From sequence record PQ015379.1: DNA of 64,000 nucleotides, one strand, 5' to 3'. The notes under the pieces were generated by a model that was given only the letters and a program-made list of their open reading frames with translations, made no database searches and had not been told where the DNA came from. Each line of letters starts with the position of its first letter. The first letter of the stretch is position 1. Positions 26,012 to 62,025 of the stretch are shown here, one piece after another. The position numbers were made by a program, and so were the translations under genes.

Positions 26012-26848
26012 CTACTTGAGGATCGACTTTTTGAGTTGGTCGAGTCCATATTTTTCGCAAATGCGCGTGAAGGCTTTCACGTTCACTTTAGAAATTGACA
26101 AATCCAATTCCGTGTTTGCGTCGTACAGGTCGTGCCGGATGGTGACTAACTGCCGATTCAACTTCAGGATCTTCTTTGTATTTACAGTTTCTCGCGCCCG
26201 CTTTGGGAAACGTTCAACTGGAATCTTTTCAGCTTTGCCAAACTCTTCGATCAAAAGGATTGCGGTTTTAGCCCCAACACCCGGAATGCCCGGAATGTTG
26301 TCGATATCATCGCCGTCCAACATGAGGAAGTCTACCATTCGCTTGGCAGCAACTCCATAGATTTCTTTACAGTTTTTTCTGGATACGACGACCTTTTTAT
26401 TCGGGTTAATCAACCGAACGTGATCGTGATTCAGCAGCTGCGCGAAATCTTTATCCCCGGAAAGGATATAGGCCAAACCGCCTTCGTAGCCAACGGCAGT
26501 TGAACCGATCACGTCGTCGGCCTCTACACCTTTCTTGCCGAACACGGCAAAGCCCATTGCATCCAGCAGTTCGACAATCACCGGCAGTTGTTTTGCAAGC
26601 GATTTGCTTTTCTCCGGATCTTTCGGGCGCGTGCCTTTGTACTCGGGGTGGATTTCGTGGCGGAAATTCTGGCCGGGCCGGTCAAACGAATTCAGTACGT
26701 GCGTGGCCCCATATTCACGGATATTCGCTCGCAGAATGTTGATGTAACCGACGATGGCGTTTGTTGGGAAGCCTTTGTAACTCATGGGCCGTACAGCGTG
26801 GTACGCCCGGTGCATCGTGTTGGTGCCGTCTACTGACAAAAGGGTCAT
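26012..26848 (-). CDS. 5'-3' exonuclease/flap endonuclease (PolI N-domain-like)
   Basis: LLSVDGTN..HRAYHA, FRHEIHPEYKGTR, VEADDVIG, ILSGDKDFAQL, LDGDDIDNIPGIPGVGAKTA. Confidence 0.92.
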   Translation of the reverse strand: MTLLSVDGTNTMHRAYHAVRPMSYKGFPTNAIVGYINILRANIREYGATHVLNSFDRPGQNFRHEIHPEYKGTRPKDPEKSKSLAKQLPVIVELLDAMGFAVFGKKGVEADDVIGSTAVGYEGGLAYILSGDKDFAQLLNHDHVRLINPNKKVVVSRKNCKEIYGVAAKRMVDFLMLDGDDIDNIPGIPGVGAKTAILLIEEFGKAEKIPVERFPKRARETVNTKKILKLNRQLVTIRHDLYDANTELDLSISKVNVKAFTRICEKYGLDQLKKSILK

Positions 26849-33666: not shown

Positions 33667-33723
33667 ACACGTGCACCTAACGTTTGTGGTTATGCCCATT
33701 ATTTACAGTTTTTGCCACAAACG

Positions 33724-46336: not shown

Positions 46337-46634
46337 TCCTTTTGTGATCGTCTACTGTGCAGAAATTTCTGATGCGTTGGCCAAAATTCCCGAAGAGGAT
46401 TGGCCTTCGCATGTGGACGATCCAGAACACCGGCTCTACGGCCACCCGATGTTCCTTTTGACCGTGAGCCAAACACAACATATTGGCATCAGCAATAAAC
46501 CGAATCCAGATTGGATAAAATCCCACAAACTAATGCTGCGTTACGGACTCGTTGAGCCGCGCAGTTATGGAGCGACCAATGAGCGACGAACCGAAGAAAA
46601 AGAAGAAAAAGAAAAAGGGGTTGATGAAATCTGA
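46329..46634 (+). CDS. hypothetical protein
   Basis: 101 aa ORF. Confidence 0.5.
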   Translation: MPDPFVIVYCAEISDALAKIPEEDWPSHVDDPEHRLYGHPMFLLTVSQTQHIGISNKPNPDWIKSHKLMLRYGLVEPRSYGATNERRTEEKEEKEKGVDEI

Positions 46635-47790
46635 ATCCCTTGACCTGAAGCCGAAGAAGAAAAAGAAATCTTCCGAGGAACAGGAAACCGGCCTCAAGAA
46701 AAAGAAGCCGAAGGACTATGGGCGTGACGTGAGTGGCACCCTCGAAGGCGACGGCAAGAAGAAAAAGAAAAAGGATTTGGCGGAAAAACCCGCTGAACCT
46801 GTTCGCGAACTTCTGCCGGTCGAACAAGACGATTACATCATCGTCAAAGTCGGCAAGAAAAACGAACTCGCCTTCGCACACAGCCCCAAGCGTAACACCG
46901 CGTACATCGAGCGCACGATGAACACCGATGCGCCGGTTACTTTCGAATATGACGGTAACACGCTGATTGCCAACCTCGGCAAAGATCCACTGCCCGGCAA
47001 AGTGCATGGCGTGGATATCCAGCCGCACTATGGCACCATCGATACCCCAATGGGGCCGATGCACATGTACCGCAAACTGAACGACGCGGAAAAAGATGCA
47101 ATCCGTATCGCGCAGAAAAAGATCGTGAAGAAATTCGAAAGCCTCGGCCTCGAAAAACTCTTCCCGTTCACCTCGCTGGAAGTGCACAACCCACGCGGGC
47201 GCTGGGCCGGTATGTATCAGGTCAGTTTCAAATCTGGCGAGGCAGTGGACAAGGTAAAACTGTTCGCGAAAATCCTCGACGACCAAATTTACAACCAGTA
47301 CGTTTTCGCCCACGAATGCGGCCATGGCATCTGGTATCGCTACGTGCCCGAGCGCATCCGCGCCCTGTGGCTGGAACAGTACAACGCGATGACCGCTGTC
47401 ACCAAGGCCAAGAAATCCGAACTGGCCGACCAGTGCCAATCGCTGATCGCTTCGTCGCTGTCGATTCGTGATTTCCAGCGTGATCTGGAAGGCGATGAAC
47501 TAGCGATGTTCAAGGAAGCGCTGGGCTACCTGAAGAAAGTCCACAAAATGTCGCCTGAAGACGTGAACGTTCTGCTGAACCAAAACAGCAAAGTGCTCGC
47601 CGAAATCTGGCCGACTTCTGCCTCGATTTCCAACGCCGATTCGCTGGCCGCGCTGCATGGTCCGTACGCCGCCGTTTCCGTGCAGGAAATGTTCGCAGAA
47701 ATCTTTGCTGCGCACATCAAAGGCGATCACGTGGGCAAGACCCTGACCAAGCTGCTGGAAAAAACCCTCAAAGTCGCACGGAGCGAATAA
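46579..47790 (+). CDS. zincin-type metallopeptidase with poly-Lys N-terminus
   Basis: FAHECGHG (HExxH) and distal QEMFAE; start MSDEPKKKKKKKK at 46579 with GGAG RBS. Confidence 0.7.
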   Translation: MSDEPKKKKKKKKGLMKSESLDLKPKKKKKSSEEQETGLKKKKPKDYGRDVSGTLEGDGKKKKKKDLAEKPAEPVRELLPVEQDDYIIVKVGKKNELAFAHSPKRNTAYIERTMNTDAPVTFEYDGNTLIANLGKDPLPGKVHGVDIQPHYGTIDTPMGPMHMYRKLNDAEKDAIRIAQKKIVKKFESLGLEKLFPFTSLEVHNPRGRWAGMYQVSFKSGEAVDKVKLFAKILDDQIYNQYVFAHECGHGIWYRYVPERIRALWLEQYNAMTAVTKAKKSELADQCQSLIASSLSIRDFQRDLEGDELAMFKEALGYLKKVHKMSPEDVNVLLNQNSKVLAEIWPTSASISNADSLAALHGPYAAVSVQEMFAEIFAAHIKGDHVGKTLTKLLEKTLKVARSE

Positions 47791-47793
47791 CCA

Positions 47794-48048
47794 ATGGGCG
47801 AAGATGATTTGAAATACGAAGAGGCGTTGCTGCTGGGCGGTCCGCACAACGGGCAATTCCTCGACGTGATCGTCGGCGCCGAACAAGTGTTGGTGCGCGG
47901 TGATCAATCGGTTGCTGCGCACGAACAAAACGCATGGGTGTATAAACGACACGAACTGCGGTCCAACACCGGGCGCAGTTACGCGATCTACACCTACGGC
48001 AAAATCGACATTCTGAAAACTCTTCTGGAAGGGTACAAAAAACTATGA
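47794..48048 (+). CDS. hypothetical protein
   Basis: 84 aa; LLLGGPHNG. Confidence 0.7.
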   Translation: MGEDDLKYEEALLLGGPHNGQFLDVIVGAEQVLVRGDQSVAAHEQNAWVYKRHELRSNTGRSYAIYTYGKIDILKTLLEGYKKL

Positions 48049-48311
48049 AGAAAATTCTGATTATTTTGTCGCTACTATCGGTCGCCGGTTGCGGAGACGA
48101 TAAAGTCTACGTCGATGCCACGACCGGCCAGCGTGTAGCGGCCCCGGAAGAGCGCAATCTGGAATCTTTCAACTATACGAAATCCACGAATTACGCGATG
48201 GATCGTATGTGTATCGATGGTGTTGTGTACCTGCGTTATGATCGCGGGATCACCGTCGCTTTCAAATCTGACGGCACGGTCGCTCGCTGCAAAGGGGCGC
48301 AGCTACTATGA
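48045..48311 (+). CDS. lipoprotein
   Basis: MKKILIILSLLSVAG-C signal II/lipobox. Confidence 0.8.
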   Translation: MKKILIILSLLSVAGCGDDKVYVDATTGQRVAAPEERNLESFNYTKSTNYAMDRMCIDGVVYLRYDRGITVAFKSDGTVARCKGAQLL

Positions 48312-48556
48312 CCAACGCCACGTGGTGGATCTTGGGCCTGTTTTTCGCGGGCGTCCTCGCACTGATCGTGGTTGCGGTTTATCGTGGCCGGGCCAAGCCT
48401 GAACCAACACCGACGAAACGCAAAAATCCTAAAAGCCGGATGGAACGCAAACTGTCGCGGGAAGTTTACGCGAAGGCCATCAGACACGGCGCTACCGAGG
48501 CCGAAGCGCGCAAATGCGTTGCCCTCTACCTAAAACGCCGGGCTGCTAAACTGTAA
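48308..48556 (+). CDS. small N-anchored membrane protein carrying a KAIRHGATEAEA module
   Basis: TM WWILGLFFAGVLALIVVAVY then basic domain shared with 60727..62025. Confidence 0.8.
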   Translation: MTNATWWILGLFFAGVLALIVVAVYRGRAKPEPTPTKRKNPKSRMERKLSREVYAKAIRHGATEAEARKCVALYLKRRAAKL

Positions 48557-48591
48557 ATACAGGGTAAGCCCTCAATCGAAGTGACTGTGAC

Positions 48592-49776
48592 ATGGCAAAA
48601 GAAGTGAAGAAGAAAAAGACGTTCAAATCTGACACCGAAGAGAACGTGAAGGCCGCCAAGAAAAAAGCGAAAGGCAGTGGCGAAAAGCTCACGCTCGAAA
48701 CTTCGCAGCTGGCCAACGAATACCGCCCGCGTAAGCTGGATCAAGTAGTCGGTCAAGACACAACGGTCGCGGCCCTCGAAGGTATGTTCAAGCGCGGAAA
48801 GATTCCGCAAGTTATGCTTTTCTCCGGTCACTACGGCTGCGGCAAAACGTCGTTCGCCGGGATCGTGGCCCGCATGATCAACTGTGAAACGCTCAACCTG
48901 TGCGGCAAGTGCGTAAGCTGCCGTATGGGCAAACACCCTGACCTGATCGAACACGACGCGGCGGTCAAAGGCAACATCGACGCCATCCGTTCGCTGATCG
49001 CAGCAGCAGGCAACGCCCCGAGTTTCCGCAAGCGTGTAATTCTGGTGGACGAAGTGCACGCCCTGCGCGACCAAAGCGAAAAAGCGATGCTGACCAGTGT
49101 GGAAAATCCGCCGCCGAATACCATTTGGTTGCTGTGCACCACCAACCCGGAAAAAATGAACAAGGCGTTGGTTAGCCGGGCAACGCATTTCCGCCTGAAG
49201 CAAATCGAACTCGACACCATGGTCGAGCGTCTGAACTTCATCGCCGAAGCCGAAGGGCAGAAGCTGAAGAAAGAAGTCAAAAAAGCGATTACCACCATCG
49301 CAGAATCCAGCAACGGCTCGCTTCGTGAAGCAGTGTCCAAGCTGGATTTGTTGCTTTCGGTCCTCGCATCCGGGCGCAAGTACAACCCGGACGACCTGAG
49401 TTCGTTCGTCGATATCGAAGCAGACCTCGACGAATATTCCGCGCATTTCCTTGCGTCGATTTTCAAACGCGACCTGATCAAGATGGTGCAGTGCGCCAAG
49501 ACCTGCGGCGGTGTTCGCGGCCTGATCAACAAAACGCGCTGGCTTGTTGAATACAAGATCGGACAGCACACCGGCACCAACAAATACACGCCTTACAACG
49601 GCAAGCTTTTCGATGCGCTGGCCAAACAGGAAGGGATCAAGAAAACCGGCATCAAGCCGCTGATCATGATCCAGAATTTGCTGAGTGAAATCGAAGTCAA
49701 ATTGAACAGCGCGACGCTCGACGAAACCGTTGTGTTCTATAGCTCGGTCGGCGCCTTTATCGCAGAGAACGAATGA
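48592..49776 (+). CDS. dnaX: DNA polymerase III gamma/tau-like clamp loader ATPase
   Basis: YRPRKLDQVVGQ, GHYGCGKTS, CGKCVSC, ILVDEVHAL; ACTGTAAA at 48550-48557 upstream. Confidence 0.85.
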   Translation: MAKEVKKKKTFKSDTEENVKAAKKKAKGSGEKLTLETSQLANEYRPRKLDQVVGQDTTVAALEGMFKRGKIPQVMLFSGHYGCGKTSFAGIVARMINCETLNLCGKCVSCRMGKHPDLIEHDAAVKGNIDAIRSLIAAAGNAPSFRKRVILVDEVHALRDQSEKAMLTSVENPPPNTIWLLCTTNPEKMNKALVSRATHFRLKQIELDTMVERLNFIAEAEGQKLKKEVKKAITTIAESSNGSLREAVSKLDLLLSVLASGRKYNPDDLSSFVDIEADLDEYSAHFLASIFKRDLIKMVQCAKTCGGVRGLINKTRWLVEYKIGQHTGTNKYTPYNGKLFDALAKQEGIKKTGIKPLIMIQNLLSEIEVKLNSATLDETVVFYSSVGAFIAENE

Positions 49777-51851
49777 TGGATCTTTCCACTACCGAAGCGG
49801 GACTGCTTTACACGATCAAAAACGAGCCGGGTAAAACCCTGACTTACTACGGCGACCAACTGCGCACGTCGCATACGCACCTGACCCGTGCGCTGGAAAA
49901 ACTGGTGCGTGCAGGGTACGTGGAGCGCATCGACAACAAGCTGACGATTTCTGATTCGTTCATGAAAAAGGAAGAGCAGGAAGTCGAGGCCGAGGCGCCT
50001 GAAGCGGTAGTGGAAATTCCTGAACCAGTTGTCGAAGAATCAGCACCCGAAGTTCCGGCTGAACCCGAGCCTGAAGAGGTTGTGCCGCCGAAAACTGACG
50101 GTGACAAAGTAATCGACAAAATGCTGGACGAAATGCAGGATCGTCCCCGCATCACGTCGATGGAATTGCAAAAGCTTCTGGCCGATGGTGTGCCGCGTAC
50201 TGCGCTGCAAATCGCTATGCACTTCGGCTACAACCGGGGCACCGCCGTTGCGCAAGTGCTGCGCAATATGTGCAACGCAAACGTGATGGTGAAAGAAGGC
50301 CCGCTGTATTCGCTGAAACACGAACCGACGATTGCCGTTGTGCAGCAAAGCGGAATCGTTGTGCGCAAGGGCGAGCCTGACGACATGATCGTTAAGGACA
50401 AACCACGCATTCCCGGTCTGGATGACTGCGAACTACGCGAAGCAATTCTGCGCCTGCGTGAGCCGTTCACCGCCGAACAGTGTTTGGCGATCCTGCAACG
50501 CCGCCACAAAGTGGAACGTGTGCCGTTCCTCGAAGTTTTCGAAACCATCGCGTTTGCCAACAAATTCGTGGCGTGGGACGGTAACGAATTCGTCGATCCA
50601 ATCGTCGATTATTCCCCGACCCACACGTTCATCGTGGTTGACCGCATGGACGCAAAAGATGCGTTCAAACTGCTGGACAACTATTGCGAGAAATTCAAAG
50701 AACCTTACAAGCTTTTCGAGGTTGTGAGTGTCACGCGCCTGCCTCCTGCCGAGGTGCTGGCGTATTTCAGCGATATGAATTATTTCACGCGTGATATCAA
50801 CAAAATCACGCACGGCAATTTCGCGCCACACTACCCGAACCGCAAGGATCGGCAGGCTGCGAAGCGTGGCCCGGCCCCGGCCAAGCCTTACGCACGTCTC
50901 GAAACGCTGGAACAGGAACACGTGAAGCGTTTCATGCTGGGCGGCGTGTCGGTTGATACGTTCATCAAACGTTTCCACATCGACCCAGCAGAAAAAGCGC
51001 GTACTGTCGAACTTCTGGTAGCCGCCAAACTGGCTCGCCATGACGCGGAAAACGATTGGGTATTCCTGCGTGATGATGTGGAAATGAAGCCACTGAAACT
51101 CGGTGACTACGACGCACCCGAAATCGAGTTGCCTGATGATCATATTCTGAACGATGAATTGTCGGAAGTTTTGGTCGCCTGCATCGAAGAGGAAGAGCAG
51201 CCAAAACCAGATTTCGAAGTCGGCCCCATGCACGAAATCCCACAAGATCAATTCAACGAAATGGTGGATCGTTTCGTCGGTGTGTTGCCTAGCGCCCCGG
51301 CCACTGAGGGCATCACAGTAATGACCGAAGGCATGGTCGAAATGTCGGTCGAGGACTACGAAAAAGCGCTGGCCCAAGGCGCGGATTTGTTGCTGTATCA
51401 AGTTCTGCCGTGCGGCCAACGTGTGCACGTGTGGACCAACAAACGCCCAGCCGAAACCACTGCCGAGGATCAGGCGGAAGAACTCGACGACGATGTGTTC
51501 GGCGGCGATTCCTGCGATGGCTGTGGTGCTGGCCCTGACGACGAATGCACCTGCATGAACACTCGCTGCGGCGAATGCGATCACGTCGATTGCGTTTGCA
51601 AACTTGACGATTATGTTTTTGGCTGCAAAGGTCCGAAAGGTGCGCCCACATCGGATGGCCCTACCGGTACGTGCGGCATACAAGGCACGTACCACCTGCA
51701 ACGCTGCGCCAAGATTTTCTGTAAAGATTCTGTACCTGATAAACGTTGGGGCCTTGTGCTGCAAATGTTGGAAGAGCGTATGCGCTTCGAACATCAGTAC
51801 ACGTCCGCCGACCAACTCAAAGCAATTCGTGAGTATTTGGAAACCCCATGA
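49773..51851 (+). CDS. large multi-winged-helix-like protein with acidic linkers and Cys-rich C-terminus
   Basis: N-term EPGKTLTYYGDQL...LTRALEKLVRAGYVER is MarR/wHTH-like; SCDGC...CTC...CGECDHVDCVC. Confidence 0.55.
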   Translation: MMDLSTTEAGLLYTIKNEPGKTLTYYGDQLRTSHTHLTRALEKLVRAGYVERIDNKLTISDSFMKKEEQEVEAEAPEAVVEIPEPVVEESAPEVPAEPEPEEVVPPKTDGDKVIDKMLDEMQDRPRITSMELQKLLADGVPRTALQIAMHFGYNRGTAVAQVLRNMCNANVMVKEGPLYSLKHEPTIAVVQQSGIVVRKGEPDDMIVKDKPRIPGLDDCELREAILRLREPFTAEQCLAILQRRHKVERVPFLEVFETIAFANKFVAWDGNEFVDPIVDYSPTHTFIVVDRMDAKDAFKLLDNYCEKFKEPYKLFEVVSVTRLPPAEVLAYFSDMNYFTRDINKITHGNFAPHYPNRKDRQAAKRGPAPAKPYARLETLEQEHVKRFMLGGVSVDTFIKRFHIDPAEKARTVELLVAAKLARHDAENDWVFLRDDVEMKPLKLGDYDAPEIELPDDHILNDELSEVLVACIEEEEQPKPDFEVGPMHEIPQDQFNEMVDRFVGVLPSAPATEGITVMTEGMVEMSVEDYEKALAQGADLLLYQVLPCGQRVHVWTNKRPAETTAEDQAEELDDDVFGGDSCDGCGAGPDDECTCMNTRCGECDHVDCVCKLDDYVFGCKGPKGAPTSDGPTGTCGIQGTYHLQRCAKIFCKDSVPDKRWGLVLQMLEERMRFEHQYTSADQLKAIREYLETP

Positions 51852-54154
51852 TCAACATCACCGGCAGCCGTTTTGGCGGTATCGTCTCGTACAAAAAGGG
51901 TGAATTTGATTTCACCAACAACTGTGGTCTGACCACGGTTTCCGGACACAACCGCGACTCCCTGATTTCCAAGAATCAGAACAACGGCGCCGGTAAATCC
52001 CTGCTGTTTTCGATGCTGCCTAACGTCGCTTTCGAGCAGACGCCGATGGCCGACACGCGGAAGAAAAACCGCATTCACTCGAAAGGATCGTTCATCGAAT
52101 TCGATGTGGAGAACTTGGGTCACAAGTGGACGATCCGCCAGCAGGGCAACGGTTACAAAATCTTCCGCGACGGTACGGATCTTGAGGTTCGTGGCCAAGC
52201 CAACCAGCGGGAACAAATCGCGAAAATCATTCCTCTGACGCCCGAGGAATGGTATTCGTATGTGCACCTGCAATCGCAGAAGAAACTGGAATTCCTGTAC
52301 GGCACACCACGTGCCCGCATGACCTATATCAGTGATGTGTGGCGTCTCGATCAGTTCGACGTGCTGCGTCGGTTCTTCGAAAAGAAAATCGACGAAGTAA
52401 AAGTCGCGCAGAACAAGTCGGATGCCTTCAGCCACCAGCTGATGAACATCAATGACGCGCTGAACAAAAACGGCTGGAACAAAAAGCTGGACAAGGAACT
52501 GGCCGAGGCGAAAGAAATCGTCAAAACCCAGTCCAAGAAAGTGACGAAGCTTCAGACCCAGCGGCAGGAACTGAAGAGTCTGGCCAAGCAGGTCGAGTTC
52601 TACACGACCACGAAACAAAAGCTGGATAAACTCAAGGGGAAAATCCGTTGGGATCTGGCCGACCTGAAAGAGCAGTATCAGCTGCATCAACAGGCCGAGA
52701 AGCACGCAGAAGAAATGGAAGAGTACGACCGGCGTACCAAGAAACTGGTACGCAAGTTGGAAGAACTGGGCGACACTTCCGGGGGAGGCAAGGCCAGCAA
52801 AAAGAAAATCAAGGAACTGCGGGCAGAACTCGCCAAGTTGGAAGAGGACGACCGGCGCCTTGAGAAGGTCCGCGACAAGCACGACGCTGCTGTGCGCGAA
52901 CTGGAAAACTTGGATGATCACGTGGACCCTGATCTGCGGAAATTCCTGTCCAAGTGCAACAAAGAAAAAGTCGATCCGATGGAGGCCCTGAAAGAGGAAT
53001 ACGCCGAAGCGAAATCGACGATGAAGCTGGCCGATCTACTGCACGATCACGACGGTGGCAACTGCCCGACGTGCCAACAGTCGATCAACCTGAAGGATCT
53101 GGAAAAAACCATTGCTTCGGCCAAAAAGCGCCGGGGCAAAGCGCACTCGATGATTCACGCGCTGGAAATCCGGATCACCAAGGAAGAAAACACCAACATC
53201 ATCAAGCAACTGAAGTTCGATGATCGGAGTTTCTACAAGGCCCGCAAGCGCATCAAGACCATCCGCGCCGAACTTGTAACGCTCGAAGAACAGATGGAAA
53301 ACGCAGTGCGTTATGACGAAATCATGGCGCAGATGCAGGAACTGAAAAAGCCCAAGGCGCCGAAGCGTGCACCTGTTGTCTCGATGGAAAAGATCGAACA
53401 GCAAAAGGAATACCACGACGAAGTAAAACGCCTGAAGCTGCGCCTTGCCGAGTTCGACGAAGTACCCGAAGACGACAACATTCTGAAGCGTCTGGCGGAA
53501 GTTGAAACGAAGCTGGCCAAGGTTGAAAAGAAATACGCCAAGGCTCACAAAGTCACGGTGCGTTACAGTTCGTTGCGTGCAGAATTCAAACTGCTGACCA
53601 AGCAGCGCGAAGAAACCAGCGCCAAGATCGAAGAATTCGCCCCGCTGATCAAAAAGCTGGCGCGGTTTAAGGTTCTGGTCAAAGCCTATAGCAACAAAGG
53701 GCTAAAGCTGAACGCCATGCACGAAATCGTGTACGGGCTTCAGCAGAACTACAACAAATACGCACAGCTGATTTTCGCTGAGCCGTTTAAATTCCACGTG
53801 GAAGCCAAGGAAGACGGGGTGCACATCATCGTTGACCGGGGCCAAGGCAACGTGTCGGATGTTCGTGAATTGTCCGGCGCAGAATCGGATAGTTTCCGCC
53901 TGCTGCACTTCCTCGCATGCGTGATCATGGCCAAGGATGATCGCCGGGTTAACCTTGCGATTCTCGACGAACCAGACGCGCACATGGACCCAGCAACCAC
54001 GCAACTTTTTGTCGAACGTTACGTTCCGTTCCTGCGCAAGCTGGTGCCTCACGTGTTCATCATTACGCAGAAGGGCAAACACCTGCACCCGGAATGCTCG
54101 TACGTCACGGTCGAGAAATTCAAAGGGGTTTCCAATGTTCGCTACGACGCCTGA
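51848..54154 (+). CDS. sbcC: SbcC/Rad50/gp46-like SMC ATPase
   Basis: NGAGKS Walker A, coiled coils, CPTC zinc hook, LSGAE signature, LDEPD Walker B. Confidence 0.92.
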   Translation: MINITGSRFGGIVSYKKGEFDFTNNCGLTTVSGHNRDSLISKNQNNGAGKSLLFSMLPNVAFEQTPMADTRKKNRIHSKGSFIEFDVENLGHKWTIRQQGNGYKIFRDGTDLEVRGQANQREQIAKIIPLTPEEWYSYVHLQSQKKLEFLYGTPRARMTYISDVWRLDQFDVLRRFFEKKIDEVKVAQNKSDAFSHQLMNINDALNKNGWNKKLDKELAEAKEIVKTQSKKVTKLQTQRQELKSLAKQVEFYTTTKQKLDKLKGKIRWDLADLKEQYQLHQQAEKHAEEMEEYDRRTKKLVRKLEELGDTSGGGKASKKKIKELRAELAKLEEDDRRLEKVRDKHDAAVRELENLDDHVDPDLRKFLSKCNKEKVDPMEALKEEYAEAKSTMKLADLLHDHDGGNCPTCQQSINLKDLEKTIASAKKRRGKAHSMIHALEIRITKEENTNIIKQLKFDDRSFYKARKRIKTIRAELVTLEEQMENAVRYDEIMAQMQELKKPKAPKRAPVVSMEKIEQQKEYHDEVKRLKLRLAEFDEVPEDDNILKRLAEVETKLAKVEKKYAKAHKVTVRYSSLRAEFKLLTKQREETSAKIEEFAPLIKKLARFKVLVKAYSNKGLKLNAMHEIVYGLQQNYNKYAQLIFAEPFKFHVEAKEDGVHIIVDRGQGNVSDVRELSGAESDSFRLLHFLACVIMAKDDRRVNLAILDEPDAHMDPATTQLFVERYVPFLRKLVPHVFIITQKGKHLHPECSYVTVEKFKGVSNVRYDA

Positions 54155-57052: not shown

Positions 57053-57449
57053 AGGTTTCCCCGACTACGGCAAGCAAGGCACCCCGCAATCGTGGACCTT
57101 GAATTTCGATAACCTGCCTAGCGGCATGAATTACAAGCCACTCAAAATCACGCTCGGCGCCCCTGAACGCCATCCGGTTCAGATGGATTTTACTGTCACT
57201 GAAAACCTGTTCGACCTGCAAGAAAACCCCGACATGAAAATGTTGAAGTATTTGCAGGATTGGGCGGCACTGGCCAAAGCCCACAACGACGTGCCACGCT
57301 TCACCGTGGATTCCGGGCGCAAGGGTGTGACCGTCACGTTTAGCAAGGCCCCGATGCTGCGCCTGTGGTTCCGTTCCCGTCGTCTGGCCAAAGTCTACGC
57401 CAAAAAGCACGACGTTTCCTTTTCGCACATGAGTTCTGAACAATGCTGA
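57036..57449 (+). CDS. hypothetical protein
   Basis: 137 aa ORF. Confidence 0.65.
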   Translation: MLKLAEGFPDYGKQGTPQSWTLNFDNLPSGMNYKPLKITLGAPERHPVQMDFTVTENLFDLQENPDMKMLKYLQDWAALAKAHNDVPRFTVDSGRKGVTVTFSKAPMLRLWFRSRRLAKVYAKKHDVSFSHMSSEQC

Positions 57450-58078
57450 AAATGTACATCGCTGTTTTGACCGACGCGCCCGACTACATGGTGCCTACGC
57501 TGGTCGCGCACTCGGTGCTGAACGCGCACGAATACTTCACCGACACCGAGTACCGCACCACGGAACAGTTGCAGACTTATCACGAATGGCAGCACATGTG
57601 GTTCCGCAAAGTGGTTTTGCGTGTGAACCGCCGCGAATTCACCAAGATTCGCGAAACACTGCTTTGCTGGGCGGGTCACGAAAACACGATCTGCAATGCT
57701 GAGCCGTCGTGCCTCGTTGTGTTCCCGGTTGAACACGACAACGTACCGAACGTTCTGAAGTTCGCGAAAATGTGGAAACCGGAAACCGTAACCCCGCCAC
57801 TGCCGCCTCAAGTTCCGGGCACCAAGCAAGTCGATTACCGCATGCTTCCCGAATCGGTAAAACAGTTGGTGCAAAACGAATCGTTCGACATGTACAAAGT
57901 TGAACGTTATTTCAAGGCGCATGCGGCCCTTGAATCGGGGATTTACGTTGTGCAGCCCGGTGATTACCTGTCGGCCATTGCTGACGACCTCGGCATGGAT
58001 TGGCGCGAACTCGCCCAGTTCAACGGTTTGACCAACCCGGATTTGATCTATCCCGGCCAAGCGATCCGCCTCCGTTAA
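57443..58078 (+). CDS. PTH2-like peptidyl-tRNA hydrolase domain fused to C-terminal LysM
   Basis: KMYIAV......PTLVAHS...KVVLRV (PTH2-like); YVVQPGDYLSAIA...WRELAQFNGLTNPDLIYPGQAIRL (LysM). Confidence 0.7.
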   Translation: MLKMYIAVLTDAPDYMVPTLVAHSVLNAHEYFTDTEYRTTEQLQTYHEWQHMWFRKVVLRVNRREFTKIRETLLCWAGHENTICNAEPSCLVVFPVEHDNVPNVLKFAKMWKPETVTPPLPPQVPGTKQVDYRMLPESVKQLVQNESFDMYKVERYFKAHAALESGIYVVQPGDYLSAIADDLGMDWRELAQFNGLTNPDLIYPGQAIRLR

Positions 58079-60601: not shown

Positions 60602-60726
60602 GTAGTCCGGGGGCGACCCCGGAATTAATTAATTCCCGACCATACTAATTTATTTATAGTTGGTCGGCATCGCGGCGCTGCGATTAAAGGCCTACTGCAT
60701 AAACCCTTAATCGAGGAATTCCTAAG

Positions 60727-62025
60727 ATGGTCATGAAAGCCGTCCAAAAGGACAAAAGCGCTGCTGCTGTCAAAGAGCGCAAGGTAGCGAAAGCTCGCCG
60801 CCGCAAATCGAAACACAAACTCAACCGTGAGGCACGCGCCAAGTACAAGGCGATGACCGTGCAAGAAAAACGCGACCTGCACGCACAGGCCGTTTTCACC
60901 AAGGCCATGCGCCATGGTGCGACCGAAGCCGAAGCGAAAAAGATCAAGGCCGCGTGGCTGAAACGCCGCAAACTGCGTGAACAGGGCCAACACGCCGCTG
61001 GTAAGCGCCGCGATGCCCACTCGGCTCAACGTCAAATTCGCTCGCAACTGAGCCGCAAAGCTGATGCCCTGAGCACCCAGCACAAAAAAGCTCTGCAAGC
61101 GATCAAAACCAAAGGCAAAACTCCTGCCGCCCGCGCTCAACTGCGTGCCAAGGAAAAAGCCCGTTACGCCGACGCTCGCAAAGCGCTGGCCGCCGAGCGC
61201 ATGAAAGCCACCGGTGCCCACAAGGCCGCTTTGAAGAAGATCAAATCGAAAGGGAAATTCTCCCTGAAGAGCATGATCAGCAACTACAAAGACAAGCCGA
61301 TCAGCACCCAAGGCAAGCGTCTGGTTAACGTGGACAAAATCGGCAAGAAAGCTCAAGCCGATGGCATCGCGAAAATCGCTGGCAAGCACTTCAACGCCAC
61401 CAAGATCAAAACTGGCGGCGCCAAGAAGAAAACCCCAGCCGCTGCTGCCCCAGCCGCCGCTGAAGCTCCGGTGAAAAAAGGCCGTGGTCGTCCAAAAATG
61501 ACCGAAGAGCAAAAGAAAGCAGCCGCTGAAAAGCGTGCCGCCGCCAAAGCTCCTGCCACCCCGGCCAAAAAAGCTGAAAGCAAAAAGGCTGACAAGCCTG
61601 CCAAAGCTCCGGCCAAAAAGCCTTCCGCGAAGAAAACCGAGGCTGCCCCGGCTGCCCCGGAAAAACGCGGTCGCGGTCGTCCAAAAATGACCGAAGAGCA
61701 AAAAGCAGCCGCCAAACTGGCGCGTGACGCCAAGAAAGCTTCTGCTGCCAAACCGGCCAAAGCTTCCAAAGCTCCAAAAGCTCCCAAAGCTTCCACCAAG
61801 ACCAAGCCTTCGGCCAAGTCGAACGTAGAAGCCAAGGAAAAGCCGGAAAACAAAAAGCCAGCGGCCAAGACCAAACCGTCGAACGCCCCGGCCAAAAAGC
61901 AGCCCGCCACCAAACCAGCGGCTAAACCCGCTGCGAAGAAACCGGCCAAAAAGCCTGCCGCTGAAGCGAAAGCTCCGGGCAAGCAAAAAACCGGTGGCGC
62001 CGCTCCTAAAGTCCGCCTCGCCTAA
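60727..62025 (+). CDS. histone H1-like Lys/Ala-rich protein with two AT-hooks
   Basis: 432 aa; KKGRGRPK and KRGRGRPK; KPAAK repeats; GAGG RBS; own terminator. Confidence 0.8.
   Translation: MVMKAVQKDKSAAAVKERKVAKARRRKSKHKLNREARAKYKAMTVQEKRDLHAQAVFTKAMRHGATEAEAKKIKAAWLKRRKLREQGQHAAGKRRDAHSAQRQIRSQLSRKADALSTQHKKALQAIKTKGKTPAARAQLRAKEKARYADARKALAAERMKATGAHKAALKKIKSKGKFSLKSMISNYKDKPISTQGKRLVNVDKIGKKAQADGIAKIAGKHFNATKIKTGGAKKKTPAAAAPAAAEAPVKKGRGRPKMTEEQKKAAAEKRAAAKAPATPAKKAESKKADKPAKAPAKKPSAKKTEAAPAAPEKRGRGRPKMTEEQKAAAKLARDAKKASAAKPAKASKAPKAPKASTKTKPSAKSNVEAKEKPENKKPAAKTKPSNAPAKKQPATKPAAKPAAKKPAKKPAAEAKAPGKQKTGGAAPKVRLA
61486..61703 (+). repeat. 29-bp direct repeat (61486-61514, 61675-61703) encoding the AT-hook module GRPKMTEEQK
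   Basis: GGTCGTCCAAAAATGACCGAAGAGCAAAA occurs twice. Confidence 0.9.

Follow-up and report, generated by a model that had tools for sequence, protein, structure and literature searches.

Membrane proteins that organise phage DNA replication have been described for Bacillus phage phi29, in which p16.7 and p1 link the terminal protein and the DNA to the membrane (PMC4974454). As a general kind, small phage membrane proteins tied to DNA-associated proteins are already known. Here we analyse a protein of 82 residues encoded in a 64,000-nucleotide stretch (the window) of the circular, 313,683-bp record of Pseudomonas jumbo phage HRDY3, a relative of Lu11 (PQ015379.1; record position equals window position plus 124,000). 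This protein shares a helical hairpin with a larger, AT-hook/H1-like protein of 432 residues from the same phage. Both proteins are annotated as hypothetical in the HRDY3 record (GenBank XDJ15172.1 and XDJ15192.1, respectively), and our literature search found no publication on this phage. Window positions 46500-52500 are 100% identical to PQ015379.1, and jumbo phage Lu11 is the sole other isolate with DNA similarity.

Like p16.7 and p1, the 82-residue protein is small, phage-encoded and anchored in the membrane by its N-terminus, with a helical C-terminal part predicted to be cytoplasmic, and its gene lies among replication genes. Unlike them, it has a two-helix hairpin only, and we found no relation to either protein in sequence or fold. 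The C-terminal domain of p16.7 is dimeric, multi-helical and binds DNA, whereas the 82-residue protein gave no family, PHROG or PDB-sequence match. Moreover, phi29 offers no counterpart to the homology with the phage's own histone-like protein, while in HRDY3 the binding of a partner is hypothetical.

Two further comparisons come from outside phages. Truncated paralogues of nucleoid proteins, such as H-NST relative to H-NS, keep the oligomerisation part and join or cap the assemblies of the larger protein. The HRDY3 pair is similar in that the short protein corresponds to a helical interaction element of a larger protein with a helical N-domain and AT-hook-type DNA binding. However, there is no homology to H-NS, MvaT or Lsr2, the HRDY3 fragment is anchored in the membrane, and oligomerisation of the H1-like N-domain is presumed. 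In the eukaryotic inner nuclear membrane, LEM/HeH proteins carry a two-helix module of about 40 residues that is also present in chromatin proteins and ties chromatin to the membrane. The resemblance is one of analogy only, with no sequence match and with an extended inter-helix loop in HeH in place of the tight four-residue turn described below.

The closest described relatives of the larger protein are PaBG gp191 and Lu11 gp111, two uncharacterised basic proteins from the Lu11/PaBG group of jumbo phages. Like the HRDY3 protein, they are encoded after SbcD and before head genes and combine a helical N-domain with a tail rich in lysine, alanine and proline. In contrast, the gp191 hairpin does not have the RHGATEAEA signature, gp191 has no AT-hooks and PaBG has no small transmembrane (TM) paralogue. 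In Lu11 the signature is present and the small TM gene is absent.

A helical hairpin in a membrane protein and a histone-like protein

The original prediction, made from the letters of the window alone, held that the small membrane protein and the H1-like protein share a module of about 25 residues. BLASTP bore this out: residues 53-78 of the small protein and 56-81 of the large one align without gaps at 18/26 identical and 22/26 positive positions (E 4e-9). When the 26-mer was shuffled 200 times and compared with the six-frame translated window, the best match was 11/26 and the mean 9.1. A six-frame search of the whole 313,683-bp record found only two copies of the module (self E 2e-19, other copy E 6.5e-8), and the profile of the small family matched that of the H1-like family with 96% probability over 31 columns (hhalign, E 4e-9). 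The relation between the hairpin of the small protein and the best-conserved part of the AT-hook/H1-like protein is one of homology, beyond mere likeness. Chance similarity and a spurious open reading frame (ORF) are ruled out by the shuffles, the hhalign result, six syntenic orthologues and a proportion of nonsynonymous differences (pN) below that of synonymous ones (pS).

The two copies are identical at 52/78 nucleotides, and 10 of the 18 identical residues use the same codon, compared with 7.7 expected from local codon usage (P = 0.18). Thus the similarity is kept at the protein level, as had been noted from the differing codons, and recent gene conversion between the copies is unsupported. 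The peptide strings first read as the module were correct, although they begin at 48464 and 60892; the positions originally assigned, 48473 and 60901, are the K of KA[I/M]RHG and lie 9 nt too late. The ending LKRR, which had been counted with the module, occurs in HRDY3 alone, and orthologues do not conserve it.

The small gene encodes a real, selected, bitopic inner-membrane protein. Its single TM helix, recognised from the outset, coincides with a 19-residue Kyte-Doolittle maximum (mean 2.60) at residues 6-24. In an AlphaFold2 model built from an alignment of four orthologues, a helix spans residues 3-28 and is followed by a low-confidence linker (residues 29-43) and by a hairpin with a predicted local distance difference test (pLDDT) score of 82-90 and a tight four-residue H-G-A-T turn. 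The module had been foreseen as a small helical element, and the model agrees, giving an alpha-hairpin at pLDDT about 90. This hairpin of about 38 residues is predicted to be the sole folded cytoplasmic element of the protein. The HRDY3 protein has no lysine or arginine ahead of the TM segment and six in the next 15 residues; in all six orthologues there are 0-1 before the helix and 4-7 in the 15 residues after it. On the positive-inside rule, this asymmetry predicts an N-out, C-in topology with the hairpin facing the cytoplasm. The part after the TM helix has 19 lysine/arginine versus 5 aspartate/glutamate residues and an isoelectric point (pI) of about 10.8. The start codon of the ORF and the stop codon of the lipoprotein gene upstream overlap (ATGA), and natural variants in two DNA runs carried three synonymous changes and one conservative change.

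A public RNA-labelled run (X4) contained a 414-nt contig with depth 46 and one mismatch that spans 48300-48683, that is, the small ORF and the first 90 nt of the clamp-loader gene. The adjoining upstream piece had a depth of 2.6, the remainder of the 4-kb stretch was absent, and less than 5% of the H1/structural region was represented. The transcript of the small gene may be relatively abundant and short, a lead only, given that these contigs come from a run picked by this very query.

The N-domain of the 432-residue protein was modelled as a stack of three hairpins (helices 12-27/29-42, 45-62/67-85 and 90-127/133-171), the second of which is the shared module; hhalign alternatives gave no internal hairpin repeat within the domain. 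The C-terminal tail of 227 residues contains 58 lysines, 65 alanines and 27 prolines (pI 11.1). With this tail and two GRGRPK motifs, the AT-hook/H1 label of the original prediction was a fair one. Pfam AT_hook (PF02178) is precomputed on two homologues (P0012 and P0016), although Pfam gave no match at E below 0.01 on the HRDY3 protein itself. The likeness to H1 is limited to tail composition: no eukaryotic H1/H5 winged-helix was matched in Pfam, and the N-domain consists of helical hairpins throughout. Membership of the H-NS, MvaT or Lsr2 families was likewise not indicated by any Pfam or NCBIfam match or by any significant fold match. Fifteen metagenomic homologues and Lu11 gp111 match the N-domain at 42-60% identity. 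In the alignment of 17 H1-like sequences the longest invariant run is A60-A70, AMRHGATEAEA, which is the tip of the module. The intergenic region ahead of the gene (60603-60726) has a GC-rich hairpin, CCGGGG-GCGA-CCCCGG, and then an AT-rich tract (TTAATTAATT ... TAATTTATTTATAG). This arrangement resembles a terminator ahead of a promoter of another kind, perhaps a late one, where the structural block begins.

Database searches placed the module in no described family. It matched no HhH, RHH, SAP or HTH family in Pfam at E values up to 10, nor in NCBIfam, and neither the module nor the two full proteins gave anything meaningful in Pfam, PHROGs, NCBIfam or PADLOC. Matches of the module profile to PDB sequences were at chance level (E 0.5 or above), and Foldseek with the module found nothing below E 1. 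Fold searches of the PDB, AFDB clusters, BFVD and the ESM Atlas returned generic helical hairpins, with PaBG gp191 the sole useful match. A likeness to the RNase H1 hybrid-binding domain (AVRRG ... ATEDEAWAFV) was split over two distant segments, scored 12 bits and was taken as chance. As a domain the module is undescribed and its distribution is very narrow; it has no relative in Pfam, PHROGs, NCBIfam or the PDB.

Distribution and divergence of the small gene

Loci of metagenomic relatives (L numbers) were collected through the clamp-loader gene that adjoins the small ORF. A small ORF lies directly before the clamp loader in L006, L008 and L010 (identical to each other), L009, L011 (protein P0024) and L024. 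These six loci represent five further distinct orthologues, all of which keep the TM helix, a variable basic linker and a C-terminal hairpin with the signature hY..Ah[R/D].GA[T/S]..EA......Y. Orthologues of both HRDY3 proteins retain the module; its absence from them had been named in advance as part of what would refute the original prediction.

The wider search for carriers proposed with the original prediction compared 1.84 billion representative proteins with a 39-column profile built from both families (E up to 1e-3), and it recovered essentially the two families only. The 13 matches were seven H1-like clusters, four small TM clusters, one false match on a repeat protein (P0023) and one borderline singleton (P0025; E 3e-4 with the module profile). 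P0025 has 101 residues and lies at 552-857 of L012, a 1.3-kb high-GC metagenome contig. Its module-like N-terminus, RVYDRAIRQGKTEAEAQAAVASW, is fused to a zinc-ribbon domain, and the module was present in none of the 119 other members of its zinc-ribbon family listed among 338 found. This unconfirmed singleton may represent a third architecture or may match by chance.

HRDY3 and two complete relatives (308 kb and 314 kb) each have one small and one large carrier about 12.3 kb apart, and every complete genome examined that has the small gene also has the large protein. The small gene was not found in Lu11, of which the whole genome was searched, or in the Lu11-like L026; nor was it found in the more distant L025 and L027 or in L028, a P0012-type phage with two lipoprotein genes in the slot. 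In a clamp-loader tree the carriers group as three well-supported pairs, whose branching relative to Lu11 is an unresolved polytomy; the outgroup has no small gene. Only a subclade of Lu11-like jumbo phages has the small gene, which in every case is flanked by the peptidase/lipoprotein genes on one side and the clamp loader on the other. Because Lu11 and more distant relatives lack it, it is a lineage-specific derivative. Most likely, the H1-like protein had the hairpin first, and duplication of this segment with fusion to a membrane anchor later gave rise to the small gene.

Comparison of orthologues indicated purifying selection on the small gene, with ratios of nonsynonymous to synonymous substitution rates (dN/dS) of 0.11 and 0.22 in the two pairs for which dS could be estimated and pN below pS in all pairs. 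Nevertheless the protein varies greatly between close relatives. HRDY3 and the 308-kb relative L009 have clamp loaders that are 93% identical and H1 N-domains that are 78% identical, but their small proteins are only 35-38% identical; in blastn the flanks align at 78-81% with a gap exactly at 48312-48549. Either very fast divergence or allele replacement would account for this difference. Since a membrane helix and a basic linker carry little sequence information, they can account for much of the divergence.

The charge of the hairpin also varies. In L006 it is net acidic (2 lysine/arginine, 5 aspartate/glutamate), in L008/L010 it is neutral (4/4), and the tails of both are not basic. These hairpins favour protein-protein contact over DNA contact. 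The original prediction of a small helical interaction or DNA-binding domain stands as to the helical element, whereas direct DNA binding is weakened by the acidic and neutral hairpins and by the lack of HhH, RHH or SAP matches.

Possible roles of the membrane-anchored hairpin

The nature of the H1-like protein bears on any role for the small one. Among predicted viral structures, Foldseek matched the 432-residue protein to Lu11 gp111 and to a PaBG protein (E 8.7e-5, TM-score 0.51, 28% identity). The PaBG protein is PaBG_00191 (gp191). Its gene follows SbcD directly and precedes the connector and head genes, an order shared with HRDY3 and Lu11. The protein matched the H1 family profile with 95% probability over 166 columns (hhalign, E 2e-8). 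Its computed mass is 35,272.5 Da. In purified PaBG virions, gp191 is listed as a protein of unknown function of 35,272.92 Da and is band 8 of 14 Coomassie-visible proteins (PMC7412058). It was present in several bands, from which the authors inferred multiple proteolysis sites (PMC7412058). Thus gp191 has been published as an abundant, proteolytically processed virion protein. Since it is a homologue in the same position after SbcD, the HRDY3 432-residue protein is most likely also a packaged, DNA-associated, proteolytically processed and abundant virion protein, and the H1-coated phage DNA of the original prediction is plausible. Another PaBG virion protein is gp202, a 221-kDa helicase-like protein encoded shortly after the head genes (PMC7412058, Table 1). 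Lu11 and P0012-type contigs (L029/L030) have a large SNF2-type helicase where PaBG has gp202, and phages of the PaBG/Lu11 type may package DNA-handling enzymes alongside the histone-like protein.

We tentatively propose that the 82-residue protein is a membrane-anchored, cytoplasm-facing copy of a protein-protein hairpin and that it recruits, or competes for, the partner of the histone-like protein's hairpin. Because a lone two-helix hairpin presumably cannot bury its own hydrophobic stripe, it would have to pack on other helices, through self-association or on a docking partner. In the small protein, the docking element of the histone-like protein would thus be exposed at the cytoplasmic face of the inner membrane, where it would recruit (as a tether) or compete for (as a decoy or cap) whatever that protein's hairpin binds. 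The most economical candidate partner would be the N-domain or oligomer of the histone-like protein itself; otherwise it would be a shared third protein. A tether through homotypic contact and a membrane decoy had already been suggested in the original prediction, and both are so far conjectural. A bolder proposal is that this clade of jumbo phages packages a histone-like AT-hook protein with its DNA and that the membrane-anchored docking hairpin physically couples phage chromatin, or intermediates in its assembly or ejection, to the inner membrane on the cytoplasmic side, or else acts as a decoy that excludes superinfecting genomes. Coupling of this sort would be the counterpart, in a bacterial virus, of chromatin tethered to membranes by small helical modules that both sides share. 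We regard this proposal as unlikely.

Several observations weigh against a docking role. No direct evidence of an interaction was obtained: the single complex prediction, of the H1 N-domain with small-protein residues 29-82, scored 0.00, which is uninformative and counts neither way. The virion evidence comes only from the 28%-identical PaBG homologue, whose hairpin is without the GATEAEA signature. The small gene is absent from Lu11 and more distant relatives and hence accessory. In sister phages the small hairpin matches the invariant H1 hairpin at 9-11/26 positions, compared with 18/26 in HRDY3, so that its surface diverges, and the two modules show no co-variation within genomes, the H1 module being invariant. 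Finally, the positions common to all carriers are two aromatics, packing alanines, a turn glycine, a Thr/Ser N-cap and a capping glutamate. These are the needs of a tight helix-turn-helix fold, and the families may therefore share a fold without sharing a partner.

This last point leads to the explanation that only the fold is shared. The hairpin would be a self-stabilising helix-turn-helix 'brick' derived by duplication, and the two proteins would now have unrelated jobs, the 82-residue one having an accessory role at the membrane, such as modulating a host membrane protein, with its hairpin surface turned to other targets. Conserved positions that are all fold determinants, widely varying surfaces, the divergence of the small proteins of HRDY3 and L009, with clamp loaders that are 93% identical and a gap in the DNA alignment, the missing co-variation with the resident H1 protein and the dispensability of the gene in Lu11 all fit such a history. 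Less easily accommodated are the retention in the HRDY3 small protein of all H1-invariant tip residues (R, H, E, E, K) and the constant company of the two carriers in complete genomes. In addition, essentially no other family among the 1.84 billion proteins has the module, which argues that it is not a generic reusable brick. We consider a shared fold alone to be somewhat unlikely. Superinfection exclusion is a special case of the docking proposal, in which the anchored hairpin would capture or mis-engage the incoming H1-DNA complex of a second phage, the H1-like protein being injected with the DNA. T4 Imm and Sp, which are small inner-membrane exclusion proteins, would be functional analogues. 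However, ejection of the H1-like protein is putative, its presumed target motif is invariant rather than escaping, and the 82-residue protein showed no similarity to known exclusion proteins in Pfam, PHROGs, NCBIfam or PADLOC. In its favour, the presumed target has an abundant virion protein as a homologue, the 82-residue protein is accessory, small and fast-evolving and sits in the inner membrane, its gene occupies a variable slot, and its hairpin is predicted to face the side where injected material arrives. Even so, exclusion seems decidedly improbable.

In a direct DNA anchor, the hairpin, as a non-specific DNA-binding element with an HhH- or RHH-like turn, would act with the basic linker to pin replicating phage DNA to the membrane beside the replication machinery. 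The hairpin pattern G-h-T-x-x-x-A loosely recalls the HhH pattern G-h-G-x-x-x-A, yet no HhH, RHH, SAP or HTH family matched in Pfam, NCBIfam or PDB sequences even at E values up to 10, and helix 2 opens with an invariant acidic E-x-E. The very basic linker and tail of the HRDY3 protein would suit DNA, but the L006 and L008/L010 proteins have acidic or neutral hairpins and tails that are not basic. The gene does lie immediately before the clamp-loader/SbcCD replication-repair block, and phi29 p16.7 provides a precedent (PMC4974454), but we view a DNA anchor as highly doubtful. A lysis protein, either a holin or an i-spanin paired with the adjacent lipoprotein, is scarcely credible and was rejected on distribution and topology. 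Small size, a single TM helix and a charged C-terminus would fit, as would translational coupling to the upstream lipoprotein gene and the lack of any TM protein encoded beside the annotated endolysin. However, relatives with just one of the lipoprotein and TM genes exist, and the two are therefore no spanin-like pair with obligate co-occurrence; in addition, the C-terminal part is predicted to be cytoplasmic by the positive-inside rule (N-out, C-in), whereas an i-spanin requires N-in, C-out with a periplasmic C-terminus. A holin is also disfavoured by the location of the gene about 9 kb from the endolysin, inside the replication gene block, and by its absence from Lu11 and the outgroup phages.

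Genomic setting and significance

Features of the locus are collected below. The nonamer CTGTAAATA, which the Lu11 annotation gives as a putative middle/late promoter ahead of the clamp-loader gene, has three matches in the window versus 0.06 expected.

Coordinates of the two carriers of the hairpin and of neighbouring features (window positions)
Feature	Position	Strand	Remark
Lipoprotein, 88 aa, lipobox ...AGC, directly upstream of small ORF	48045..48311	+	Presence independent of small TM gene in relatives
Small bitopic membrane protein, 82 aa, XDJ15172.1	48308..48556	+	ORF; orthologues in same slot; pN well below pS
N-terminal transmembrane helix	48314..48391	+	AlphaFold2 residues 3-28; hydrophobic core residues 6-24
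Disordered Lys/Arg/Pro-rich linker, residues 29-43	48392..48436	+	Length and sequence vary among orthologues
Predicted cytoplasmic alpha-hairpin: helix 44-59, turn HGAT 60-63, helix 64-81	48437..48550	+	Aligned 26 residues are 48464-48541
CTGTAAATA, annotated in Lu11 as putative middle/late promoter	48551..48559	+	Overlaps small-ORF stop, precedes clamp loader
CTGTAAATA core, further copies	26179-26187 and 33700-33708	-	Each copy oriented as local genes
Clamp-loader gene, right-hand border of syntenic slot	48592..49776	+	Conserved
AT-hook / H1-like basic protein, 432 aa, XDJ15192.1	60727..62025	+	Lu11 gp111 orthologue; PaBG virion protein gp191 homologue
All-helical N-terminal domain, residues 1-205	60727..61341	+	Predicted helices 12-27, 29-42, 45-62, 67-85, 90-127, 133-171; mean pLDDT 84
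Homologous hairpin, helices 45-62 and 67-85	60859..60981	+	Aligned 26-mer 60892-60969; contains A60-A70
AT-hook core GRGRPK, copy 1	61480..61497	+	Motif; PF02178 on homologues
AT-hook core GRGRPK, copy 2	61669..61686	+	Motif

The slot at 47794-48556, together with its counterparts in L006-L011 and L024-L028, is a variable cassette whose make-up differs between otherwise close relatives. Its members are a soluble protein of about 84-90 residues, one or two small lipoproteins (phrog_7772, C[IV]DG[IV].Y motif) and the gene for the TM helix and hairpin. Lu11, L025-L027 and L028 have one or two lipoproteins and no TM gene, and L011 and L024 have the TM gene and no lipoprotein. The annotated endolysin (57443-58078, + strand) has no neighbouring gene with a transmembrane segment.

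Upstream of the slot, a 412-residue 'metallopeptidase' (46552-47790, + strand) has a HECGH zinc motif and a long poly-lysine N-terminal region. Its position is conserved in Lu11 (gp123), PaBG (gp304) and all metagenomic relatives, and it gave no match in Pfam, NCBIfam or PADLOC. As a speculation, the H1-like virion protein, with its multiple cleavages, might be a substrate of this Lys-tailed and possibly DNA-associated metallopeptidase, whose gene lies two genes upstream of the small one. Both the clamp loader and the metallopeptidase have Lys-rich N-termini. A contig of DNA run X1 has 92 other letters in place of 83 nt that encode part of the clamp loader's Lys-rich N-terminal tail (48603-48687), and such tails appear to vary in length and sequence between strains.

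The module occurs in two contrasting architectures within one phage lineage, so that the link between them is directly testable, and the 82-residue protein is a ready probe for the role of the invariant core of the histone-like protein. Recognising the H1-like family, by way of PaBG gp191, as probable virion proteins is also useful for annotating Lu11-like phages. If the two hairpins do not bind, they would provide a clean case of a new phage gene born by duplication of a gene fragment. If instead they bind each other or a common partner, they would show how a jumbo phage without a phage nucleus positions or controls its protein-coated DNA at the membrane, or excludes rivals.

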